From: Octopus sinensis
Lineage: Eukaryota
NCBI RefSeq assembly: GCF_006345805.1
Contig: NW_021827434.1
Coordinates: forward strand, 1 to 10,111
Reading direction: 5' to 3'
DNA: 10,111 nt
Shown here: positions 1-10,111 of the stretch, piece after piece
Position numbering within the stretch: position 1 is the first letter of the stretch
Layout of the letters: each line of letters opens with the position of its first letter
Made by a program: the position numbers and the translations under genes
The notes under the pieces: model-generated
The model's database searches: none
Told to the model about the DNA's origin: nothing
Seen by the model: only the letters and a program-made list of their open reading frames with translations

Positions 1-180
1 AAACAGAAACAATTCCTATCATTGCAGGCGCATTAGGTATGATAAAAAATATTCAGACAAATACCATAACAGAACACCAGGACTTACAAATATATATAAC
101 ATACAGAAAATTGCACTACTGGGCACTGCACGCAACCTATGCAGAACACTTTCAATATAGTAACCATAAGAGCATCACTT
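1..180 (+). mobile_element. 3' end of an RLE-type (R2/R4/Dong/NeSL group) non-LTR retrotransposon ORF, frameshifted relic
   Basis: Frame 3 (3-47) reads TETIPIIAGALGMIK. After a 1-nt frameshift, frame 2 (50-160) reads YSDKYHNRTPGLTNIYNIQKIALLGTARNLCRTLSI*. The PIIxGALG...IQKxALLGTA pattern is the typical C-terminus downstream of the restriction-like endonuclease of these elements. The listed ORF 39..284 is the wrong frame after codon 3. Confidence 0.75.
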
Positions 181-182
181 GT

Positions 183-312
183 AGTTTCCACTCACAAGAC
201 TTTGGTTGTCCCGAGGCTATAGTAGAAAACACTTGCCCAAGGTGCCACGCAGTGGGACTGAAACCAGAACCATGTGGTTGGTAAGCAAGCTACTTACCAC
301 ACAGCCACTCCT
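183..312 (-). mobile_element. tRNA-derived SINE, family A (5' portion)
   Basis: Reverse complement starts AGGAGTGGCTGTGTGGTAAG (A-box-like TGGCTGTGTGG), then GGTTCTGGTTTCAGTCCCACTGCGTGGCACCTTGGGCAAG (B-box-like). It matches from memory a high-copy octopus SINE head. It interrupts the LINE 3' UTR. Confidence 0.7.
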
Positions 313-472
313 AATAGTAATGATTTCAAATTTAGTCACAAAGCTAATAATTTTGAGAAAAACGATATAATCGATACCAACGCCTTCATTATTCTATTGG
401 TATTTTATTTTATCGACACTGAAAATATGGATGCAAAGCTGATATAGGTTGTATTTGAACACAGAACAGAAA
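313..472 (-). mobile_element. Old, diverged copy of SINE family B
   Basis: TTATCGACACTGAAAATATGGATGCAAAGCTGATATAGGTTGTATTTGAACACAGAAC (410-467) aligns colinearly with TTATCGACCCTGAAAGGATGAAAAGCAAAGTCGACCTCGGCGGAATTTGAACTCACAAC (~4107-4165). There is a degenerate ATT-type tail at 313-324. Confidence 0.6.
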
Positions 473-700
473 TAGTAGTAACATACGCGGCAACGGTTGT
501 GCCGGACAGGAACTGAATATAAATATTACAGGGAGATAAACACTACATTTTGTTTATGATTGACCTCGATTTATACGCTACGAATAATAAATTAGTAGAA
601 ACAGTTTTTGAGAGAATAAATAGATTCACTAAATGATGGAAGTATGACAGATTTGAAAGGGAAAAACGCTAAGCAAAAATTAAAAAGCATCAAGATACTA

Positions 701-1165
701 GAGCGAAGGCGGCAGAGATATGCGGTGATATACAGCTGGAAAATCCTGGACGGTCTTGTCCCAAACTTTGGCATTCAAAGTTACCCCAAGCGCAGAACGG
801 GGCGCCACTGCATGGTGCCAAAGATTCCAAAGATTCCAACATCACCATCAAAATACAGGACCAGATACTGCAACAGCTTGGGTTTCAGAGGACCACAGCT
901 CTTTAACATCCTCCCTAAATGCCTGAGAGGCTTTCATGGTGTGGATGTGGGTTTCTTTAAAACTAAACTGGAACTCTTCTTGTCGGGGGTCCCAGATGAA
1001 CCTACCTCACGACAGGAGACACAGATGCGGGCAGCGGCATCAAACTCCCTTGTTGACCAAGTGCCACGTATCAGAGGTGGATTCACATATTAGTGTAGCT
1101 CATTCGGCGGTGGTGCCCCAGTATGGCCGCAGCCTTCGGGCTGAAACATTTTAAAGGAAATTAAG
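701..1165 (+). mobile_element. 5'-truncated CR1/L2-group LINE 3' fragment (RT C-terminal region plus 3' UTR)
   Basis: LERRRQRYAVIYSWKILDGLVPN...FRGPQLFNILP...FKTKLELFLSGVPDEP resembles the SLExRR/WNxLP/FKxxLD C-terminal blocks of CR1/L2-group RTs. Stop at 1091-1093, short repeat tail TTAAAGGA/TTAAGGA (1151-1167). GATACTA occurs at both 694-700 and 1166-1172 (candidate TSD). There is an in-frame 9-bp duplication CCAAAGATT at 818-835. Confidence 0.8.
1130..1143 (+). other. 3'-terminal stem-loop of the LINE (C-UUCG-G tetraloop)
   Basis: CAGCC-TTCG-GGCTG is a perfect 5-bp stem with a cUUCGg tetraloop, just before the tail. Confidence 0.6.
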
Positions 1166-1419
1166 GATACTATTGAAGAGAGAAAAGTTAATGAAGAATA
1201 CGAATGCCGTACTAGATAATAGAATTATACCAAATACTAAGAAATACTTGAGAATCAGTGAACTAGAGAAAGTGCAAAGCATCCGAATGGAAGGGAAGGT
1301 TTCGAAGAAGGAATATTATTGCTTGATTAGATTTTTAGAATAGGAAAAAATATGAAAATACGGAATTTTGTTTTCTACTGTAGTAATGTCAGTAACGAGT
1401 TATACGAATCTACGGCTAA

Positions 1420-1925
1420 TATAACAAGAACAATGACGACGCCGACAACAGCGACAACAACAAAGTATATTTAAGTCTGAACCATCATCACCATCGTCAT
1501 CACCATCGTCATCATCATCATCATTATTATCAGTCATCATCATCATCACCATCGTCATCATCATCGTCATCATCATCATCATTATTATCATCGTCATCAT
1601 CATCATCATTATTATCATCATCATCATCGTCATCATCATCATCATTATTATCATCGTCATCATCATCATCATTATTATCATCGCCACCAGCATCATCACC
1701 ATCGTCATCATCATCGTCATCATCATCATCATTATTATCATTGTCATCATCATCACCATCGTCATCATCATCATCATCATCATCATTATTATCATCGTCA
1801 TCTTCTTCATCATCATCGTCATAGGCAACACCATCTTCGTCATCATTGTCATCACTATTCTCAACCCTACCTCGCTTCTCACCATCCTCTTCATAATCAC
1901 CATCTCCATCACTAACATGATTACT
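1420..1925. repeat. Compound (CAT)n/(CGT)/(TAT) trinucleotide repeat with higher-order ~27-bp unit
   Basis: Recurring CATCGTCATCATCATCATCATTATTAT; the CATTATTAT marker occurs 7 times between ~1520 and ~1795. Confidence 0.9.
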
Positions 1926-1928
1926 ATT

Positions 1929-1960
1929 TTCTTCTTCTTCTTCTTCTTCTTCTTCTTCTT

Positions 1961-2030
<70 letters not shown>
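1929..2030. repeat. (TTC)20 directly joined to (TTA)14
   Basis: Read directly: perfect TTC run 1929-1988 and perfect TTA run 1989-2030. Confidence 0.95.
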
Positions 2031-2031
<1 letters not shown>

Positions 2032-2032
2032 C

Positions 2033-2246
2033 AAGGAGGCAAGCTGGCAGAAATGTCAGCACGCTGGAAGTAATGTTTAGCGGTGTTTCACCCGTCGCTA
2101 CGTTCTGGGTTCAAATTCCGCCAAGGTCGACTTTGCCTTTCATACTTTTGGGGTCGATAAATTAAGTACCAGTTAAAATCGACTTAACCCCTCTCCCCAA
2201 ATTTCAGACCTTGTGCCCATAGTAGAAATGATTATTATTATTATTA

Positions 2247-2289
<43 letters not shown>
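2033..2289 (+). mobile_element. tRNA-derived SINE, family B, full length with (ATT)n tail
   Basis: A-box-like TGGCAGAAATG (2045-2055), B-box GGTTCAAATTCC (2108-2119), core GTCGACTTTGCCTTTCATACTTTTGGGGTCGATAAATTAAGTACCAG, tail ...CTTGTGCCCATAGTAGAAATG(ATT)n. Homologous to the minus-strand copy at ~4065-4225. It is flanked on both sides by ATT repeats. Confidence 0.85.
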
Positions 2290-2604
2290 GATATGCCCTG
2301 ATGCAGTACCAGACAGTGGCTCTCGTGGCTTCTGATCTTAACTGATTGGAAGTGTTATCACGTATATTGTTTTGTCTTGGTATAAAAGATGGGCTACAGC
2401 AAATATTCTGCTCAATACCACAGATTTGTTTGTCAGTTGTTTGACCTTAACCAGTTGACCATGTCCCTTAGTGGCTGACGATATGTGCATCTCTGATCAC
2501 GTGCAGAAGTAGTGGGGAACATCATAGCCGTGTGTTGAGAAGGGATTCTTAGACGTTTGGATAATTCACCTTTGGAAAAATGGGTGGTTTCGTTCAACAT
2601 TCTT
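2290..2604 (-). mobile_element. Unclassified interspersed repeat fragment ending in a (TAA)n tail (probable retroposon 3' end)
   Basis: Complex sequence between two ATT tracts. On the minus strand it ends ...GCATCAGGGCATATC(ATA)n. I recall it as a common octopus repeat. No convincing ORF. Confidence 0.4.
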
Positions 2605-2636
2605 AAATTTCAGGTCTTGTGCCTATATCAGAAAGG

Positions 2637-2640
<4 letters not shown>
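2605..2640 (+). mobile_element. Isolated 36-bp 3' tail of SINE family B
   Basis: AAATTTCAGGTCTTGTGCCTATATCAGAAAGGATTA matches 2199-2234 at 30/36 positions without gaps and is followed by (ATT)n. Confidence 0.75.
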
Positions 2641-2721
<81 letters not shown>

Positions 2722-2746
2722 ATATTATTGTTATTATTATTATTAT

Positions 2747-2809
<63 letters not shown>

Positions 2810-2880
2810 TACATTTATTGTTTTTATCGTTGTTGTTGTTGGTGCTGTTATTGTTGTTTTTACTGTTGCCGTTATTAAAA
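2637..2880. repeat. (ATT)n/(GTT)n microsatellite
   Basis: Read directly; it explains the poly-L/I/V ORFs. Confidence 0.95.
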
Positions 2881-3040
2881 GACTATTGTTGTCTACATAA
2901 AACAATAATAATCCAAGATCAAAGCGACCAATCGATGTACAAGAGCTGGATGAAAGCCAAAACCAAATGATATTTACCTGGAACCGGGTTCTCCTCACCT
3001 CCAGGACACTTACCTCTCTCCTTACCGTCGCAACCTTATC

Positions 3041-3045
3041 TCACA

Positions 3046-3097
<52 letters not shown>

Positions 3098-3114
3098 ACA
3101 CACACACACACACA
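3041..3114. repeat. (CA)n microsatellite
   Basis: Read directly. Confidence 0.95.
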
Positions 3115-3139
3115 ATATGGTTTATATTATTCATTCCCT

Positions 3140-3365
3140 GTCATTCATCATCTCTCATCGTCATTCTCTCCCTCTCTCTTTCTCTCCCCCTTTCTCTCCG
3201 TCTCTCTTCTTCTTTCCTTCCGCTCCTCCCCCACCCCCCGCCACCGCCCGTTTCCTTTCTGTTCTTCTTGCTCTCCTCTCCTCGCGCTCTCCCCACACTC
3301 CACCTGCTGCTGCTCTCCCACGTGCGCCTTCCTCTCCATCCTTCGCTTCTCTTCCGTTTCTTGTC
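3140..3365. repeat. Polypyrimidine (CT-rich) low-complexity tract
   Basis: Strongly C/T-biased plus strand. Confidence 0.8.
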
Positions 3366-3411
3366 ATACAGTCTCGAACCATTTATCAACCCCGGAGCGT
3401 CGTCATTGTAT

Positions 3412-3604
3412 GGCAGCAGTAGCAGCAGCAGCAGCAGCAGTAGTAAGAGTAGCTGTTGCTATGCAAACACCACGACCAACACTACAACTGCTATCGCCAT
3501 CACCACCACACCACCCTACTATAACCTCTACTAGCATTAGAATCACCACTAACATCATCATCATCATAATCATCATCATCATCACCACCACCACCACCAC
3601 CACC

Positions 3605-3654
<50 letters not shown>

Positions 3655-3665
3655 CGACGTCGTCG

Positions 3666-3703
<38 letters not shown>

Positions 3704-3725
3704 GTCATCATCATCGTCATCTCCA
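3412..3725. repeat. Compound (CAG)n/(CAT)n/(CAC)n repeats
   Basis: Read directly. Confidence 0.9.
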
Positions 3726-3910
3726 CAACTATTCCCTAAATTGTTCCAACAGTCATATTAGAATGAAACATTGCTACACTAACACTGCCGCCAATACTAC
3801 AATCTTCATCGCCAAACAAGAGTGCTTAACCATCGTCTAACTATTCATACTAACACCTCTGCCATCACAAGCCTCGATAACGACCACCACTACTACTTTT
3901 ACAACCGTTA

Positions 3911-4225
3911 CTACCATTTCTTTATTACCACTTCTTTATTACCACTTCTTTATTACCTATTTCTTTATTACCATTTCTTTATTACCACTTCTTTATTACC
4001 TATTTCTTTATTACCCACAAGGGGCTACACATAGAGGGGACAAACAAGGACAGACAAAGGTATTAAATCGATTACATCGACCCCTGTGCATAACTGGTAC
4101 TTAATTTATCGACCCTGAAAGGATGAAAAGCAAAGTCGACCTCGGCGGAATTTGAACTCACAACGTAACGGCAGACGAAATACGCTAAGCATTTCGCCCG
4201 GCATGCTAACGATTCTGCCACCTAC
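3911..4225 (-). mobile_element. SINE family B variant with a different 3' tail and minisatellite terminus
   Basis: Minus-strand A-box-like TGGCAGAATCG (4220-4210) and B-box AGTTCAAATTCC (4158-4147). Same core as 2033-2289, but the tail is TACCTTTGTCTGTCCTTGTTTGTCCCCTCTATGTGTAGCCCCTTGTGGGTAATAAAGAA followed by tandem GGTAATAAAGAA(GT/AT/ATA). Confidence 0.85.
3918..4016. repeat. 14-15-bp minisatellite TTCTTTATTACC(AC/AT/TAT), 7 copies
   Basis: Units start at 3918, 3932, 3946, 3961, 3975, 3989 and 4004. Confidence 0.95.
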
Positions 4226-4230
4226 CGTCG

Positions 4231-4500
4231 GCGTCATCACGTCATTGTCTGCATCGTTGTCACCGTCATCATCATCATCATCATCATCATCATAATCATC
4301 ATCATCATCATCGCATATTCCATCAGCTGCTATCAGAACAAAATCTTGCTGCACGAACACTACCACCGATACTATAATCCTTGATACCAACAGAAATACA
4401 CATTCACCACCACTGGCGCCGTCGTCACCGCCGCCACCGTCACCGCCGCCGCCGCCACCGCCGTCACAACACCATCACCACCACCACCACCACTCCCACC
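4231..4500. repeat. (CAT)n, (CCG)n and (CAC)n repeats
   Basis: Read directly. Confidence 0.85.
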
Positions 4501-4714
4501 GCCTCCATATCCTGTCTGACATGAATCACTGGCTCAGCTGGTGTTCGATTAAACCTATAAGTGTCTGGTACGGATCTGTGCCCACTGATAGAAGAGTGAA
4601 AGAGCAAACATTTAAAGAGAACCATTGGTTTGAGCCTCGGGTGGTCTGGAGCTGGACGCGAAACTCTTCTGACCTGTCCAGCCTTTGCTATTAAGACCTT
4701 TTGACGGCACAAAC

Positions 4715-5032
4715 GAGAGGGAGAGAGAGAAAAAGGAGAGAGAGAGAGAGGGAGAGAGGGAGAAAGCAGTACACAGATAGGGAGACAGGTAGGTGGATAG
4801 GTTGATAAGGTGTACGGATAGAACGATAGATATATAAGATAGATGGGTAAAAAATACATAGACAGATAGATAGACAAAAATAGATAAATGGCTAAAGAAA
4901 TAAATAGATAGATAGATAAATAGACAGATAGAAGATTATTTATCTATCAATCAGACCAATCAATGTATGTATGTATGTATGTATGTATGTATGTATGTAT
5001 GTATGTATGTATGTATGTATGTATCTATCTAT
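4715..5032. repeat. (GA)n, (TAGA)n, (TATG)n compound microsatellite
   Basis: Read directly. Confidence 0.9.
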
Positions 5033-5037
5033 CTTTT

Positions 5038-5195
5038 TAGGGAGAGTTTACGAAAAAACACAAAAGACGAAGACAGGTGGTGTATAAAACAAACAGATGC
5101 ATTAGTATAACGCTCAGGAATAGAAAAAGTCTTTTACGTTTCGAGCCTTCGCTCTTACACAGAAAGGTACACAGAGAAAAAAGGAGAGAAATAAT
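5038..5195 (-). mobile_element. Interspersed repeat fragment containing a degenerate minimal hammerhead-like motif (probable Penelope-like element terminus)
   Basis: Minus strand 5166-5131 reads CTTT CTGTGTA A GAGC-GAAG-GCTC GAAA CG TA AAAG. It has stem I (CTTT/AAAG), stem II, GAAA and a GUA triplet, but the CUGANGA box is mutated. Confidence 0.45.
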
Positions 5196-5409
5196 GTGTG
5201 TAGTGGCTAGATAGATATATATATACGAAGAAACGCTCATACAAGCAACGTGGACTAAATGTTTCATAAGGAAATAGGATATTGCAATATTTTCACTAGT
5301 TTCATTGTCATGACTAGCGAAACGCAAAACCGGTCGGCTATCATAATATTTTATCCTTTAAAATATATTAAAAATATATAAATTGTGCGCACTTTCCTTC
5401 TCTTATGAT

Positions 5410-5504
5410 ACACACAGACACAGACACATATTTATATATATATCTATATTATATTATATATTATATATATATATATTAATATATATCTATATATATATAT
5501 AGAT

Positions 5505-5549
<45 letters not shown>
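5410..5549. repeat. (CA)/(TA)n microsatellite, left flank of the hammerhead repeat
   Basis: Read directly. Confidence 0.9.
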
Positions 5550-5684
5550 GAGGGCATTATACATACATGCCAGGAGGCATTCTACACAAGCCATACGCTA
5601 AGAGGGACAATCAGTCATTTCTACCAAAAATATTACTAATCCCACCGAATGCAATTTTTCAAAGAAAGACATTTAAAAATATAT

Positions 5685-5732
5685 AGACCTGTATCACAGT
5701 GATTTCATACTTACGTAATCATCAGCAGGCCT
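5685..5732 (-). ncRNA. Type I hammerhead ribozyme, copy A
   Basis: Exact reverse complement of copy B (5784-5831). Confidence 0.75.
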
Positions 5733-5783
5733 GAATATACCATAAATAAACAACGACCGGTCGTGTTTATTTATGGTATATTC

Positions 5784-5831
5784 AGGCCTGCTGATGATTA
5801 CGTAAGTATGAAATCACTGTGATACAGGTCT
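5784..5831 (+). ncRNA. Type I hammerhead ribozyme, copy B
   Basis: Stem I AGGCCTG (5784-5790)/CAGGTCT (5825-5831), core CTGATGA (5791-5797), stem II T-TAC-GTAA-GTA-T, GAAA (5810-5813), stem III TCAC-T-GTGA, cleavage triplet AUA (5822-5824). Stem I extends after a 2-nt bulge (TATAT 5777-5781 with ATATA 5832-5836). Confidence 0.75.
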
Positions 5832-6263
5832 ATATATTTTTAAATGTCTTTCTTTGAAAAATTGCATTCGGTGGGATTTAGTATATTTTTGGTAGAAATG
5901 ATGACTGATTGTCCCTCTTAGCGTATGGCGTGTATGTAGAATACCTCCTGGCATGTATGTATAATGCCCTCTATAATAAATTAATATGTCCAATAAGAAA
6001 TATTATTTTCGAAATTTTTTCTCTTATGAGGTTTTTACGCTATCTACTGACAATTTTGTGTTAAGTTTTCCTTATTAAGTAGTGGTCCTTAATTGCTAAA
6101 TTTTTATTCCGAAAAAAACTTTTCCTCTCCCGAAATGCAATTCGTAAAAGTTTGCCATTCATCCGGATATAGTTATATAAATTCAACCATGTGCTTGTTG
6201 ATGTTGATCAGTTAGCTGATCGGCTTAAGCGAAGCGGGGTCGTTGTTTATTTATGGTATATTC

Positions 6264-6311
6264 AGGCCTGCTGATGATTACATAAGTGGAAATCACGTGT
6301 GATACAGGTCT
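6264..6311 (+). ncRNA. Type I hammerhead ribozyme, copy C
   Basis: AGGCCTG, CTGATGA (6271-6277), T-TAC-ATAA-GTG, GAAA (6289-6292), TCAC-GT-GTGA, AUA (6302-6304), CAGGTCT. Substitutions relative to B fall in the stem II/III loops or keep pairing (U-G). Confidence 0.75.
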
Positions 6312-6601
6312 ATTATATTTTTAAATGTCTTTCTTTGAAAAATTGCATTCGGTGGGATTAGTAATATTTTTGGTAGAAATGACTGATTGTCCCTCTTAGC
6401 GTATGGCGTGTATGTAGAATTGCCCCTGGCATGTATGTATAATGCCCTCTATATATAAATTAATATGTCCAATAAGAAATAATTATTTTCGAAATTTTCT
6501 CTTATGAGGTTTTTACGCTATCTACCTGACAATTTCTTGTAAGTTTCCTTATTAAGTAGTTGTCCTTAATTGCTAAATTATAAATATATATATATATATA
6601 T

Positions 6602-6633
6602 AGCAAAATCAAGGAACGTTCCTTGATTTTGCT
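6602..6633. repeat. Perfect 32-bp palindrome
   Basis: AGCAAAATCAAGGAAC|GTTCCTTGATTTTGCT. Confidence 0.97.
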
Positions 6634-6675
6634 GTTGAATTTATAAATGGTCTATGACTATTTAATTTTTTCCCA

Positions 6676-6719
6676 CTAGGCCGCTGGTGGCAAAAAGATT
6701 CTGCGAAATTTTTGCCACC
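6676..6719 (-). other. 11-bp hairpin followed by CTAG|T (Helitron-like 3' terminus)
   Basis: GGTGGCAAAAA (6686-6696) pairs with TTTTTGCCACC (6709-6719). The minus strand continues AGCGGC CTAG (6679-6676) then T. Confidence 0.35.
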
Positions 6720-6721
6720 CT

Positions 6722-6732
6722 ATATTGATAAT

Positions 6733-6786
<54 letters not shown>

Positions 6787-6838
6787 ATGTATGTATACAC
6801 ACATACACACATACACACACACACATATATATATATAC

Positions 6839-6876
<38 letters not shown>

Positions 6877-6984
6877 CATACATACATATATTATATACAT
6901 ATATACATATGTATATATATATATAACACATATGTACATATAATATATATATAATATATTATATTATATACTATATATATATAA

Positions 6985-7035
<51 letters not shown>

Positions 7036-7083
7036 TTATATTATTATATATTATATATATAATATATTGTTATATAGATAGAT
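6722..7083. repeat. (TA)n/(TG)n/(TACA)n compound microsatellite
   Basis: Read directly. Confidence 0.95.
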
Positions 7084-7309
7084 ATGTAGGTAGGCAGGTT
7101 GGTAGATAAAGTCTGACATCTGGACATTTCCGCGGCCATGCTATCGGGACTGTCTCGAGCCCTGGGGAGGTTACTTCTGTTCCATTGTTAGAAAGCAACA
7201 GTTTGGTAGGTCATTGACCCAATGTCTTGGGCTGCAGCTCTAAGCCCCTGTGATCTGCGGAACAGACATTCTGTTGTCTCTCGATGCAGGCAGGTAACAA
7301 AGACAGAAA

Positions 7310-7330
7310 GTGATAGAGACGAAGAGAAAG

Positions 7331-7361
<31 letters not shown>

Positions 7362-7390
7362 GAGAGTGAGAGAGAGAGAGAGAGTGTGTG
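7310..7390. repeat. (GA)n/(GATA)n microsatellite
   Basis: Read directly. Confidence 0.9.
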
Positions 7391-7411
7391 GTGGCAAGGG
7401 AACGTGGTATT

Positions 7412-8674
7412 TTTACTACTGTCGATCACATTTCACAAGATTTACTAGAAAGTAGAATTTTGATTTTTTACCATAATCTTCGTCTCTCAGAATACTTTGG
7501 ACAAATCTTTTAGGACTCGACTAAAAAAATATTCAAAGACTAGTTACTATCATAGGAACCTTACCCGATACAATCGACTATGTTTCAGTATTCTTACTAG
7601 AAAGCAGTGGCGTCTATTTTACCATAATCTTCTTCTGTAAGAAATGTGTGCAAAAGTCCTCGAGAAATTAGCCGAACGGTATTCTAGGAACAGTCACTAA
7701 AACAGGAACCATACATGAGTTACTATCGACCCCCTTTAAGTAGGTTGACAAAAGAGCGGTGCCTTCCTTCTTTCGGTATAATCTTTCTCTCTAAAAAGTG
7801 TCTGAAAGGTCTTTGAGGATTTCACCGTAAGGGAGTCTAAAAGTAATCCCAATAATTGCGACTCGTTACTGTCGATCACTTTTCCGCAGAATTCCTAGAA
7901 AACTGTAGCTTCTATTTTACCGCATTCTTTGTCTCCAAGAAATGTTTGGACAAAATGCTATGAGGACTTGACCGAAGGGGATTCTAAGGCTAGATTCTAT
8001 CATAGGTCGGAGGCGCAATGACCCAGTGGTTAGGGCAGCGGACTCGCGGTCGTAGGATCGCGGTTTCGATTCCCAGACCGGGCGTTATGAATGTTTATGA
8101 GCGAAAACACCTAAAGCTCCACGAGGCTCCGGCAGGGGTGGTGGTGATCCCGCTGTACTTTTCGCCACAACTTTCTCTCACTCTTTCTTCCTGTTTCTGT
8201 TGTACCTGTATTTCAAAGGGCCGGCCTTGTCACTCTCTGTGTCACGCTGAATATCCCTGAGAACTACGTTAAGGGTACACGTGTCTGTGGAGTGCTCAGC
8301 CACTTACACGTTAATTTCACGAGCAGGCTGTTCCGTTGGTCGGATCAACCGGAACCCTCATCGTCGTAACCGACGGAGTGCTTCCATCTATCATAGGCAG
8401 TAAACTTGATACTGTCGAACATATTTCATCAGAGCGGTACCATCTATTTTCCTTTTTTTACCATATTCCTCCTTTCCAAGAAGAGTTTGAAAAAACCTTT
8501 GAGAACTTCACCGAAGACGTATTCTAAACTAGTCTCTAACAAAAAGATAATATTCGATACAGACAGTCGACCATTTTCAGCAGATTAGTTAACAAGCAGC
8601 ACCTTATTCGTGTTACCATAATTTATCTCTCCAAGAAGAGTTTGGCAAAGCGTACGAAGATTTGGCCGAAGAGG
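7412..8674. repeat. Degenerate ~150-bp tandem array (about 6 units) interrupted by a SINE
   Basis: The anchor ACCATAATCT or a variant occurs at 7470, 7621, 7775, 7919, 8460 and 8615. Spacings are 151, 154, 144, 541 (150 + 391 insertion) and 155. CTGTCGATCAC at 7419 and 7869 is exactly 450 apart. Confidence 0.85.
8007..8386 (+). mobile_element. tRNA-derived SINE, family C, full length with 11-bp TSD
   Basis: A-box TGACCCAGTGG (8019-8029), B-box GGTTTCGATTCCC (8062-8074). Perfect direct repeat TCTATCATAGG at 7996-8006 and 8387-8397. Removing 391 bp restores the 150-bp array period. Confidence 0.9.
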
Positions 8675-8827
8675 TAAAGTGTCTGTCTCAAGTTCTTTCA
8701 ATGTTGGCAATCTTCATCACTATGGTCACCAGACAGAGTAAAACTGTCAGCCATTCTGTCTGGTACTTTATATGAAACGAGCCAACAGTTCTGAATTCCT
8801 TGAGGACTGCAGTTATTCAATGATGAC

Positions 8828-9200
8828 AGTGTGTATATATTGATATGAGTACATGTGTGTGCGTATATATGTCGTATAAGTGTATGTGTAAGTGTAGTAT
8901 ATGTGTATGTGTGTGAGTATGTGTGTGTGTATGTATGTGCGTGTAGGCTTTGATGTACGAGTGTTTGAGCGTAATACGTATACATACATACATATATGCA
9001 TACATATATACATACACACATACTGTTATACATGATTGCTTGTCAAATGTTTGTTCTCAGTTTAAACAGTTTAAACAAACATATACAAAAGTGTAAGACG
9101 TGTGTGTGTGCATATATATATATATATATATGTGTGTGTGTATGCGTATACATAGATAAATAGCCAGATAGATAGTATACATACCTACTCACACACACAC

Positions 9201-9235
<35 letters not shown>

Positions 9236-9470
9236 GACTCGCACATATACAATATAAAGCGCACACAAATACATACATAAGCAAGCAACTATAAGTATAT
9301 ATACATCTTTCTCTCTCCTTTCCTTTCTCTACCTACCTACCTATCTACCTACATACTACCTACCTACTTACTTATGTATGTATGTATGTATGTATGTATG
9401 TATGTATGTATGTATGTATGTATGTATGTATGTATCTATCTATCTATCTATCTATCTACCTACCTACCTA

Positions 9471-9506
<36 letters not shown>

Positions 9507-9533
9507 TACATACATACATACATATATATATAT

Positions 9534-9564
<31 letters not shown>

Positions 9565-9660
9565 CGTGTGTGTGTAGGATTGTATTATGTTAATACATGT
9601 TTGTACCTATACGTATGTATGTACATACACACTCTCACGCACACACACATAATCGCACAT
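8828..9660. repeat. Compound (TG)/(TA)/(CA)/(CTAC)/(TATG)/(TATC) microsatellites
   Basis: Read directly. Confidence 0.9.
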
Positions 9661-9954
9661 ACATCTATGAATGTAAGATTCTAAGAATGTTTGAAAAGAA
9701 GTGTGGTGTGGAGCGTAAGTGTGAACAGTTCCGTGTGCAGTTAGTGTGACCGTTGAGAGCTCCAGTGGCACAGTAGTGTCACCAATGATGAATGACTGTT
9801 TATATTTAGATGTCCTGGTCCTGGAATTGTGTATACAGGTCATTAGAATTGTTAACTATCCCCCTTAGGTTTGCTCTTCTTCGTGGTTACCCGTTTCTAC
9901 ACGCTGACATCCAAGCACCAACGCACGCGCACACTAAGTCCCCCTGCACTCGTA

Positions 9955-9991
9955 CATATAAAATATATATATATATATATATTATATATAG

Positions 9992-10026
<35 letters not shown>

Positions 10027-10111
10027 TTATGTATAGATATATGTGTATATATATGTATATATATATATGTATATATATATATGTATATATATATATATGT
10101 ATATATATGTA
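9955..10111. repeat. (TA)n/(TATG) microsatellite
   Basis: Read directly. Confidence 0.95.

Follow-up and report, generated by a model that had tools for sequence, protein, structure and literature searches.

A hammerhead-bearing head-to-head insertion in Octopus sinensis probably belongs to a young family of retrozyme-like tandem arrays

What gave rise to three hammerhead-like motifs that lie, one inverted and two in tandem, within a 10,111-nt stretch of the Octopus sinensis genome (contig NW_021827434.1, positions 1 to 10,111; hereafter the window)? The original prediction saw in them a non-autonomous, ribozyme-bearing retroelement, either the pseudo-LTR of a Penelope-like element or a retrozyme-like locus. 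Our analysis favours the latter: the block at 5532-6579 is probably a moderately old insertion of a young, genome-wide set of non-coding retroelements, which are built as tandem arrays of a ~480-nt unit and are of the animal non-LTR retrozyme type.

BLAST to the unit and repeat comparison define 5532-6579 as a single block of ~480-nt repeats, in which a partial unit on the minus strand is followed by a full unit and then a 339-nt unit, both on the plus strand. The original prediction had drawn the feature at 5685-6311; its motif coordinates hold, but the feature is wider and takes in the whole insertion, about 5532-6579. The minus-strand arm (A', 5532-5757) is a partial inverted unit covering approximately unit positions 475-480 and 1-224, and is supported by an inverted repeat (I1) of 138 nt that is 97% complementary. 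Its outer (3') end adjoins a (TA)n microsatellite at 5428-5549, identified by TRF and a listing of the flanks, and merges into it, which leaves the outer boundary ambiguous between 5532 and 5551. The two arms are joined at a head-to-head junction by the palindrome ACGACC/GGTCGT (5752-5763), and therefore both start near unit position 475. On the plus strand, unit B (5764-6243) is a full 480-nt, non-coding unit of 33% GC, and unit C (6244-6579), 93% identical to B, spans unit positions 1-339. The terminus of C is the second of two recurrent 3' ends described below and adjoins (TA)n: a short tract at 6580-6602 marks the 3' end of the plus-strand arm, and a larger (TA)n/(CA)n block lies downstream at 6721-7085. 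The remaining window is rich in microsatellites. As originally claimed, it lacks an RT ORF; no RT, GIY-YIG or other credible ORF was found within the 10,111 nt, and a Pfam search of the ten longest ORFs gave nothing real, only trinucleotide-repeat artefacts that include a weak OATP match. Since B and C (93% identity) and A' and B (about 94-97%) are less alike than the units of other arrays (97-99%), the locus in the window is one of the older insertions.

The three motifs differ in how well they are preserved. Copies A and B have, by sequence and descriptor, a complete type I core (CUGAUGA, GAAA, A15.1-U16.1 and H17) in type I order with an open helix I. In copy B, which with its extended stem I occupies 5775-5838 on the plus strand, CUGAUGA lies at 5791-5797 (C3 at 5791) and GAAA at 5809-5812, and cleavage is predicted after H17, A5824. 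Its stem I pairs 5784-5790 with 5825-5831 (7 bp, one G.U) and continues beyond a 2-nt bulge with seven more pairs (5775-5781 with 5832-5838); stem II has 3 bp, a GUAA loop of the GNRA type and a U.U at 10.1-11.1 at its base; stem III has 4 bp and a 3-nt loop. Copy A (minimal motif 5685-5732, minus strand, from the descriptor scan) is the exact reverse complement of B over 71 of 71 nt, with C3 at 5725 and predicted cleavage 3' of A5692, its H17. The core that the original prediction described as complete and ordered is thus borne out by the descriptor in A and B, and all three motifs lie where it placed them, with the anatomy that it gave, as judged by sequence and repeat comparison. Copy C (6264-6311, plus strand, nominal cleavage site after A6304) retains the core letters. 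Relative to B, however, it carries G>A in loop 2 (GUAA>AUAA), AU>G at the base of stem II and one inserted nucleotide each in loop 3 (G) and distal stem I (U), and it failed the descriptor. The original prediction took the differences between B and C to fall in loops or to keep pairing. We find instead that B is the majority form of the repeat family, whereas the variant in C is unique among 66 independent genomic copies; with its GNRA loop broken and the descriptor failed, C is therefore a case of decay after insertion rather than of covariation. The non-canonical 10.1-11.1 position was correctly noted: the G10.1-C11.1 pair, which is highly conserved in hammerheads though not absolute, is replaced by U.U in A and B, as it is in 42 + 5 of the 66 copies and in both subfamilies (see below), and in C the base of stem II is altered as well. 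The window insertion is probably moderately old and inert, and catalysis itself is a prediction from the sequence. A plus-strand transcript of the locus would, in addition, trap hammerhead B in a hairpin of >200 bp with the antisense of A'.

A search of the genome (2.72 Gb in 13,516 contigs) places the locus in a large family. At least 296 matches to the unit were scored, at 95-97% identity and in arrays on many contigs. An exact 41-nt pattern made of the core and a stem I strand occurs at least 937 times, against 0 for a reversed-pattern control. A second subfamily, likewise in ~480-nt arrays, has C instead of U at position 1.5 and contributes at least 346 exact cores; exact ribozyme cores of both subfamilies thus number at least 1283, in dispersed arrays on many contigs, and the largest arrays seen contain 13 or more units. 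The 480-nt unit is non-coding, with 33% GC and a longest stop-free stretch of 62 codons. Units are 93-100% identical overall, with means of about 97-99% within arrays and 97.7% between arrays; the family is young and the copy in the window is old. Because the family is so homogeneous, conservation among its copies says little. Comparison of the two subfamilies by their majority forms gave 18 differing columns out of 271, one of which falls inside the 48-nt motif (1 observed against 3.2 expected, a deficit that is not significant). This one change converts a G.U of stem I into G-C and so preserves pairing, and in two copies the partner base of that pair is A instead of G, which makes it A-U. 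Seven canonical Hammerhead_1 loci of the genome show no similarity to the unit. A genome search for a sister family with a compensated stem I, a lead from sequencing run X2, gave only one degenerate copy, and a 431-nt duplicate taken up as a control array (locus L036) turned out to be a plain local duplication.

The strongest evidence that the family is a retroelement comes from the anatomy of the arrays. Ends were read in ~16 arrays, within an overall sample of about 20 arrays and about 26 LINE ends. In the sense of the hammerhead, 17 of 18 downstream ends lie at unit ~213-224 or ~335-344, and all 17 adjoin a TA-rich microsatellite; the two 3' ends in the window belong to these two types. Upstream ends vary: some lie at 437/439, and inner junctions were read at 1, 6, 14, 106, 115, 257, 284, 285 and 299. 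With fixed 3' and variable 5' ends, the strand that bears the hammerhead is the strand of the RNA template. Half of the inner arm ends (7/14) cluster in the ~20 nt that immediately precede the hammerhead, at about unit 475-14 (p ~ 6e-7), a hot spot that may represent the 5' end of the template RNA or the start of transcription. On the largest contig, 14 of 28 loci with exact cores are mixed-strand, and in all 14 the minus copies precede the plus copies, head to head, with no locus in the opposite order (p = 6e-5). In 4/4 clear cases the two arms of an array have their subfamily haplotypes in common, and each two-armed array looks like a single event. The 3' ends of arrays are not at the predicted cleavage site; arrays run seamlessly through it (unit 61/62) and never end there, which argues for a multimeric or circular template rather than a cleaved linear monomer. 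Fixed 3' ends at (TA)n, variable 5' ends and the uniform head-to-head polarity therefore point to retrotransposition from multimeric or circular RNA and away from satellite drift. By array anatomy and concordant haplotypes, the family has spread by retrotransposition. The part of the original prediction that saw a non-autonomous, ribozyme-bearing and retrozyme-like retroelement agrees with all of this: the unit is non-coding, tandem and dispersed, with fixed 3' and variable 5' ends and head-to-head arms.

Could the likeness to a hammerhead nevertheless have arisen by chance in an ordinary tandem repeat or satellite, with no ribozyme activity and no role for the motif? The Rfam hammerhead search proposed in the original prediction lends this some weight, as no model reached its gathering threshold: none gave a match at E<=10 on 1151 nt, and HH9 on the 65 nt alone scored 13.8 bits against a gathering score of 52. 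The HH9 alignment, though sub-threshold, places the core, helix II, GAAA, helix III and the cleavage site correctly. (Matches to Rfam microRNAs at 5705-5811 reflect nothing more specific than the long A/B hairpin.) The non-canonical 10.1-11.1 pair and an unstable monomer fold speak for chance as well: the hammerhead fold (-11.7 kcal/mol) lies 2 kcal/mol above the MFE (-13.7), and of the three helices present around the core, helix III has a pairing probability of only ~1-2% in the monomer. Very many windows were screened, so that a rare chance motif could surface, and conservation within so homogeneous a family is uninformative. Against chance, the descriptor gave 0 matches in 3000 first-order-Markov windows, equivalent to 60 Mb of strand, and still none when stems as short as 4/2/2 bp were allowed; the motif sits on the very strand that the polarity of truncation marks as RNA template; the sole change in the motif between the subfamilies preserves pairing; and the element has the habit of a retrozyme, being tandem, dispersed, low in GC and non-coding. 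Moreover, the same deviations are found in experimentally active amphibian retrozyme hammerheads. The axolotl HHR_Amex2 has the same U.U at the base of helix II and self-cleaves, better as a dimer, and axolotl retrozyme ribozymes show weak self-processing in monomeric repeats and are much more efficient in dimeric constructs (PMC7229834). According to Cervera & de la Pena 2014 (PMC4209133), helix III is unstable and palindromic in the majority of metazoan type I hammerheads, which in tandem repeats fold as an active dimer. Two copies of the present motif are likewise predicted to fold into a double hammerhead: their cofold has -35.1 kcal/mol, compared with 2 x -13.7 (= -27.4) for monomers, with an intermolecular 5+5-bp helix III (AUCAC.U.GUGAU) and helices I and II retained. 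Given these active animal precedents and the dimer cofold, the sub-threshold Rfam scores, the U.U and the weak monomeric helix III are not disqualifying, and we consider an accidental resemblance improbable.

If the family is a retroelement, is the unit the pseudo-LTR of an autonomous Penelope-like element? Penelope pseudo-LTRs share with it a type I hammerhead with a palindromic helix III (PMC4209133; PMC8557442) and the inverted-plus-tandem layout. Penelope-type insertions are marked by 5' truncation, partial tandems, an adjacent inverted and 5'-truncated copy and a preference for (TA)n (PMC8557442, Craig et al. 2021), all of which recur in the 480-nt arrays. Penelope RT-GIY-YIG ORFs are, furthermore, abundant in this genome (5029 candidates at first look, the longest open frame having 883 codons), and one sampled Penelope copy ends beside a short TA run. 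However, no RT/GIY-YIG ORF lies between or beside the units in the window or in the arrays examined, which reach 13 or more units, and the unit shares no sequence with eight Penelope-like GIY-YIG loci of the genome. The motif, too, differs from those of Penelope pseudo-LTRs, having a full helix III and lacking the G10.1-C11.1 pair. The genome-wide search that the original prediction called for recovered the many copies but, in the arrays examined, no adjacent Penelope ORF, and its pseudo-LTR reading is not supported; the coding element found joined to the unit is an APE-type LINE. A foldback element, MITE or Helitron with terminal inverted repeats could be suspected from the inverted arms and from one array end that reads ...CTAA beside AT, as in Helitrons. 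The other recurrent end is not CTRR, however, and the polarity of the ends leads us to reject these DNA transposons: the inner junction varies while the outer ends are the 3' ends of both arms, the opposite of terminal inverted repeats. Together, the readings as an autonomous Penelope-like element or a DNA transposon appear very improbable.

The APE-type LINE, a young element, is the only coding element that we found physically joined to the unit. Three arrays begin at unit 437/439 directly after coding-looking sequence, which is the 3' end of a ~5.26-kb non-LTR retrotransposon. Its ORF1 has a weak CCHC knuckle match just under the Pfam cut-off, and its ORF2 encodes an APE endonuclease (Exo_endo_phos, E = 1e-8) followed by RVT_1 (E = 1e-19) and zf-RVT (E = 1e-10), the latter two in an open frame of >=551 codons. 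The unit might accordingly belong to this LINE or be mobilised by it, and not by a Penelope-like element, in one of two forms. The ribozyme unit could be terminal (UTR) sequence of the LINE, with the arrays as SINE-like derivatives that have lost its body, or the arrays could be read-through copies (3' transduction), severely truncated at the 5' end, that the RT of the LINE itself has made. The position of the junction is in keeping with either, as it is fixed at 437-440 in about 17 of the 26 youngest LINE 3' ends. So are four LINE copies that continue just into unit 439-480 and 1-224 or 1-338 before meeting (TA)n, and that end as arrays do; the seamless 5.3-kb tandems and one head-to-head pair that the LINE itself forms; and the terminal ...A(A/G)AT with which both LINE and array 3' ends finish. 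The LINE is also found with subfamily 2 more often than expected (6/8, p = 0.006).

Other features of the junctions are those of a LINE that enters pre-existing arrays. On the 5' side of the LINE, unit sequence ends at 455 or 474, and a 19-38-nt piece of the unit (437-455 or 437-474) therefore stands on both sides, like a target-site duplication; a unit-less LINE copy on contig C14 has an ordinary target duplication of ~19 bp. The junctions comprise three 3' variants and two 5' types, and each 5' type occurs in arrays of both subfamilies. Which unit of an array the LINE occupies differs from case to case, the arrays being otherwise typical. At the 437-440 junction, the unit is entered neither by the older LINE copies (89-92% identical) nor by several young ones (98-100%), and none of the four 3' flanks read from unit-less LINE copies has a (TA)n microsatellite. 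The heterogeneity of the junctions, the flanking duplication, the presence in both subfamilies and the unit-less flanks that lack (TA)n favour insertion of the LINE into arrays, and on balance we lean towards repeated insertion at a preferred site. Since array-like 3' ends follow some LINE copies, since the LINE forms tandems and a head-to-head pair of its own, and since subfamily 2 is in excess, it stays a candidate for the reverse transcriptase of the arrays; that it is their partner or is co-mobilised with them is possible but doubtful in our view, and that the unit belongs to the LINE or depends on it in place of a Penelope-like enzyme is unlikely.

Public sequencing runs add to the record of the unit. 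Parts of it occur in twenty runs under five coded organism labels, in every case as contigs and with none on record as RNA. Four runs were compared on a hammerhead-centred unit; as these are Logan contigs, they hold no read ends at which a cleavage site would appear. No core changes occur in the runs of other organisms, and the U>C at 1.5 recurs. The joint at which a sequence goes back to its start after 480 nt is present in contigs of runs guessed to be RNA, where it is indistinguishable from tandem DNA. Run X19, which is DNA-like, has a very high summed depth. Run X2, whose RNA nature is a guess, has 23 A>G and 15 T>C, together 38 of its 53 changes (p ~ 3e-6 against 40%); these changes are clustered by contig, and one such contig spans a head-to-head junction. 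The bias is a hint of the pattern expected from ADAR hyperediting of hairpin transcripts.

The following model would account for these observations. Each unit encodes, on one strand, a type I hammerhead whose core is complete, whose helix II has a GNRA cap and a basal U.U, and whose palindromic helix III is very weak. Arrays would be transcribed as multimers, and through helix III the hammerheads of neighbouring units would form a double hammerhead that cuts 3' of unit position 61, releasing 480-nt monomers that a host RNA ligase may circularise. A reverse transcriptase acting in trans, which could be a Penelope-like enzyme or that of the APE-type LINE joined to the unit, would then copy multimeric or circular RNA into the genome, with synthesis primed from both ends of a (TA)n break at AU-rich sites of the RNA (unit ~213-224 and ~335-344). 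Two head-to-head arrays would result, joined at a variable inner point and bounded by fixed outer 3' ends. Of this, the anatomy of motif and arrays, the size of the family and the template strand are established here, whereas we infer cleavage, action as a dimer, circularisation and the identity of the reverse transcriptase. The footprint of such a single event would be the pair of fixed, outward-facing 3' ends together with the obligatory head-to-head polarity, while the LINE would nick the unit at 437-440, beside the 5'-end hot spot at about unit 475-14. That both hold, the arrays being born complete in one event from a (TA)n break and the LINE being either a site-specific parasite or a true autonomous partner, is a tentative proposal, which we regard as slightly more doubtful than not.

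The hammerhead repeat family belongs to a known kind of element and not to a new one. Like metazoan non-LTR retrozymes, and axolotl HHR_Amex2 in particular, it is made up of low-GC, non-coding tandem repeats, each unit with a single type I hammerhead, and is distributed over many dispersed arrays; it shares with HHR_Amex2 the U.U mismatch at the base of helix II and a weak helix III (PMC7229834), from which action as a dimer is expected. Its 480-nt unit exceeds the ~170-400 nt reported for metazoan retrozymes (PMC7229834), and it is known here from DNA copies and contigs, whereas published animal retrozymes have circular RNAs. Head-to-head arms, two fixed 3' ends and (TA)n flanks are features for which we found no description in the retrozyme literature compared. 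Satellite 2 of newts and salamanders and Sm-alpha of Schistosoma, too, are tandem or dispersed repeats that are transcribed and whose hammerheads require a second copy in order to fold (Forster et al. 1988, as cited in PMC7229834 and PMC4209133); they differ from the present family in sequence, unit length and host, and the array ends seen here point to one-step retrotransposition instead of satellite expansion. As regards the LINE, Kojima and Fujiwara are said to have described, in 2004, sequence-specific APE-type LINEs of Tx1/R1-type behaviour that target other repeats. The resemblance to such elements lies in young LINE copies at one nucleotide position of a repeated target, in duplicated flanks and in LINE-target-LINE tandems; here, however, the target would be a retrozyme unit, which we have not found reported, and co-mobilisation is possible too.

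These findings concern the family and do not make the locus in the window functional, which is an old and partly decayed copy. For the family they have several implications. (i) Range. Animal retrozymes and their circular RNAs are known from cnidarians, mussels and amphibians, and a young cephalopod family of >1000 units extends that range. The original prediction held the element to be possibly undescribed in this lineage, and we indeed found nothing published on the hammerheads or retrozymes of octopus or any other cephalopod, apart from a brief mention by Craig et al. (PMC8557442). (ii) Mobilisation. Both the one-event origin of arrays and the tie to a LINE go beyond the published picture of animal retrozymes as derivatives of Penelope. 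The association with an APE-type LINE at a fixed site makes it questionable, for the 480-nt family, that mobilisation depends on Penelope-like enzymes alone. We found no literature that connects type I hammerhead repeats with APE-type LINEs, and a parasite or partner LINE would, if true, be the first link between a LINE and a retrozyme known to us. (iii) Origin of arrays. The family is young enough for the scars of insertion to be legible, and these bear on whether tandem arrays originate in one step or by later local amplification. (iv) Double-stranded RNA. By their layout alone, head-to-head arrays can give rise to long double-stranded RNA, and the A>G/T>C-biased contigs hint that their transcripts may serve as ADAR substrates.

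The 480-nt unit, a non-coding, retrozyme-type tandem repeat with a type I hammerhead, is fused at unit position 437-440 to a young APE-type LINE of ~5.26 kb in ~17 places in the Octopus sinensis genome (L046-L061; junction, for example, at L048:1890-1950), and both flanks of the LINE carry a duplicated unit piece of 19-38 nt. Its ORF2 encodes APE, RVT_1 and zf-RVT domains (part at L048:7-1662; APE domain at L053:3131-3643), and ORF1 (L053:1678-3102) gives a weak, sub-threshold match to a CCHC knuckle. Two readings fit: the element targets the retrozyme unit site-specifically, or it is the unit's partner. The LINE also shares the architecture of the ribozyme arrays (C6:9842740-9858621, C27:17509056-17520021, C2:90011366-90022051 and L059:1380-1560): its copies follow one another head to tail every 5.3 kb, almost or entirely without spacer, and a head-to-head pair lies at C2:142.09-142.10 Mb.

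Canonical Rfam Hammerhead_1 motifs elsewhere in the genome (L031-L037; for example C13:29988995-29989039) are of the CUGAAGAG...GAAAC type, score 34-48 bits and are often adjoined by TA repeats; these loci show no sequence relationship to the 480-nt unit. GIY-YIG candidates number ~5000 genome-wide in a first-look count. Two open Penelope-like ORFs, at L044:1165-3237 (minus strand) and L045:28-1794 (plus strand), combine RVT_1 with a C-terminal GIY-YIG domain. The terminus of the L045 element adjoins a short (TA)n, and a degenerate hammerhead-like stretch lies at ~2350-2395 of this locus.

In the window, all of the larger 'ORFs' are products of extended trinucleotide repeats at 1483-4312, made up of (CAT)n, (ATT)n, (TTC)n and (TCA)n microsatellites, and a weak Pfam match to OATP (1400-2062) was rejected as a low-complexity artefact. 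Directly after the short (TA)n that borders the insertion on its right comes a perfect 15-bp inverted repeat (AGCAAAATCAAGGAA/TTCCTTGATTTTGCT, 6603-6634).

Of 14 inner 5' ends of array arms, 7 are concentrated a short way upstream of the hammerhead (p ~ 6e-7), at unit ~475-480/1-14, corresponding to window ~5752-5777 and equivalent positions in the arrays of L003, L006, L017, L020 and L022; these clustered ends may mark where transcription of the unit RNA begins. When contigs of the presumed RNA run X2 were compared with a hammerhead-centred unit (L023:839-1340), 38 of the 53 changes were A>G or T>C, clustered by contig, and one contig with such changes crosses a head-to-head junction; the pattern resembles what ADAR would leave by hyperediting hairpin transcripts from the ribozyme arrays. 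On the same unit, contigs of run X19 (2.2 Gb), which carries another organism label, reach a summed depth of 50,000-300,000, and two positions of distal stem I are changed in their majority allele. The retrozyme family may be far more abundant in the X19 organism than in the Octopus sinensis assembly.
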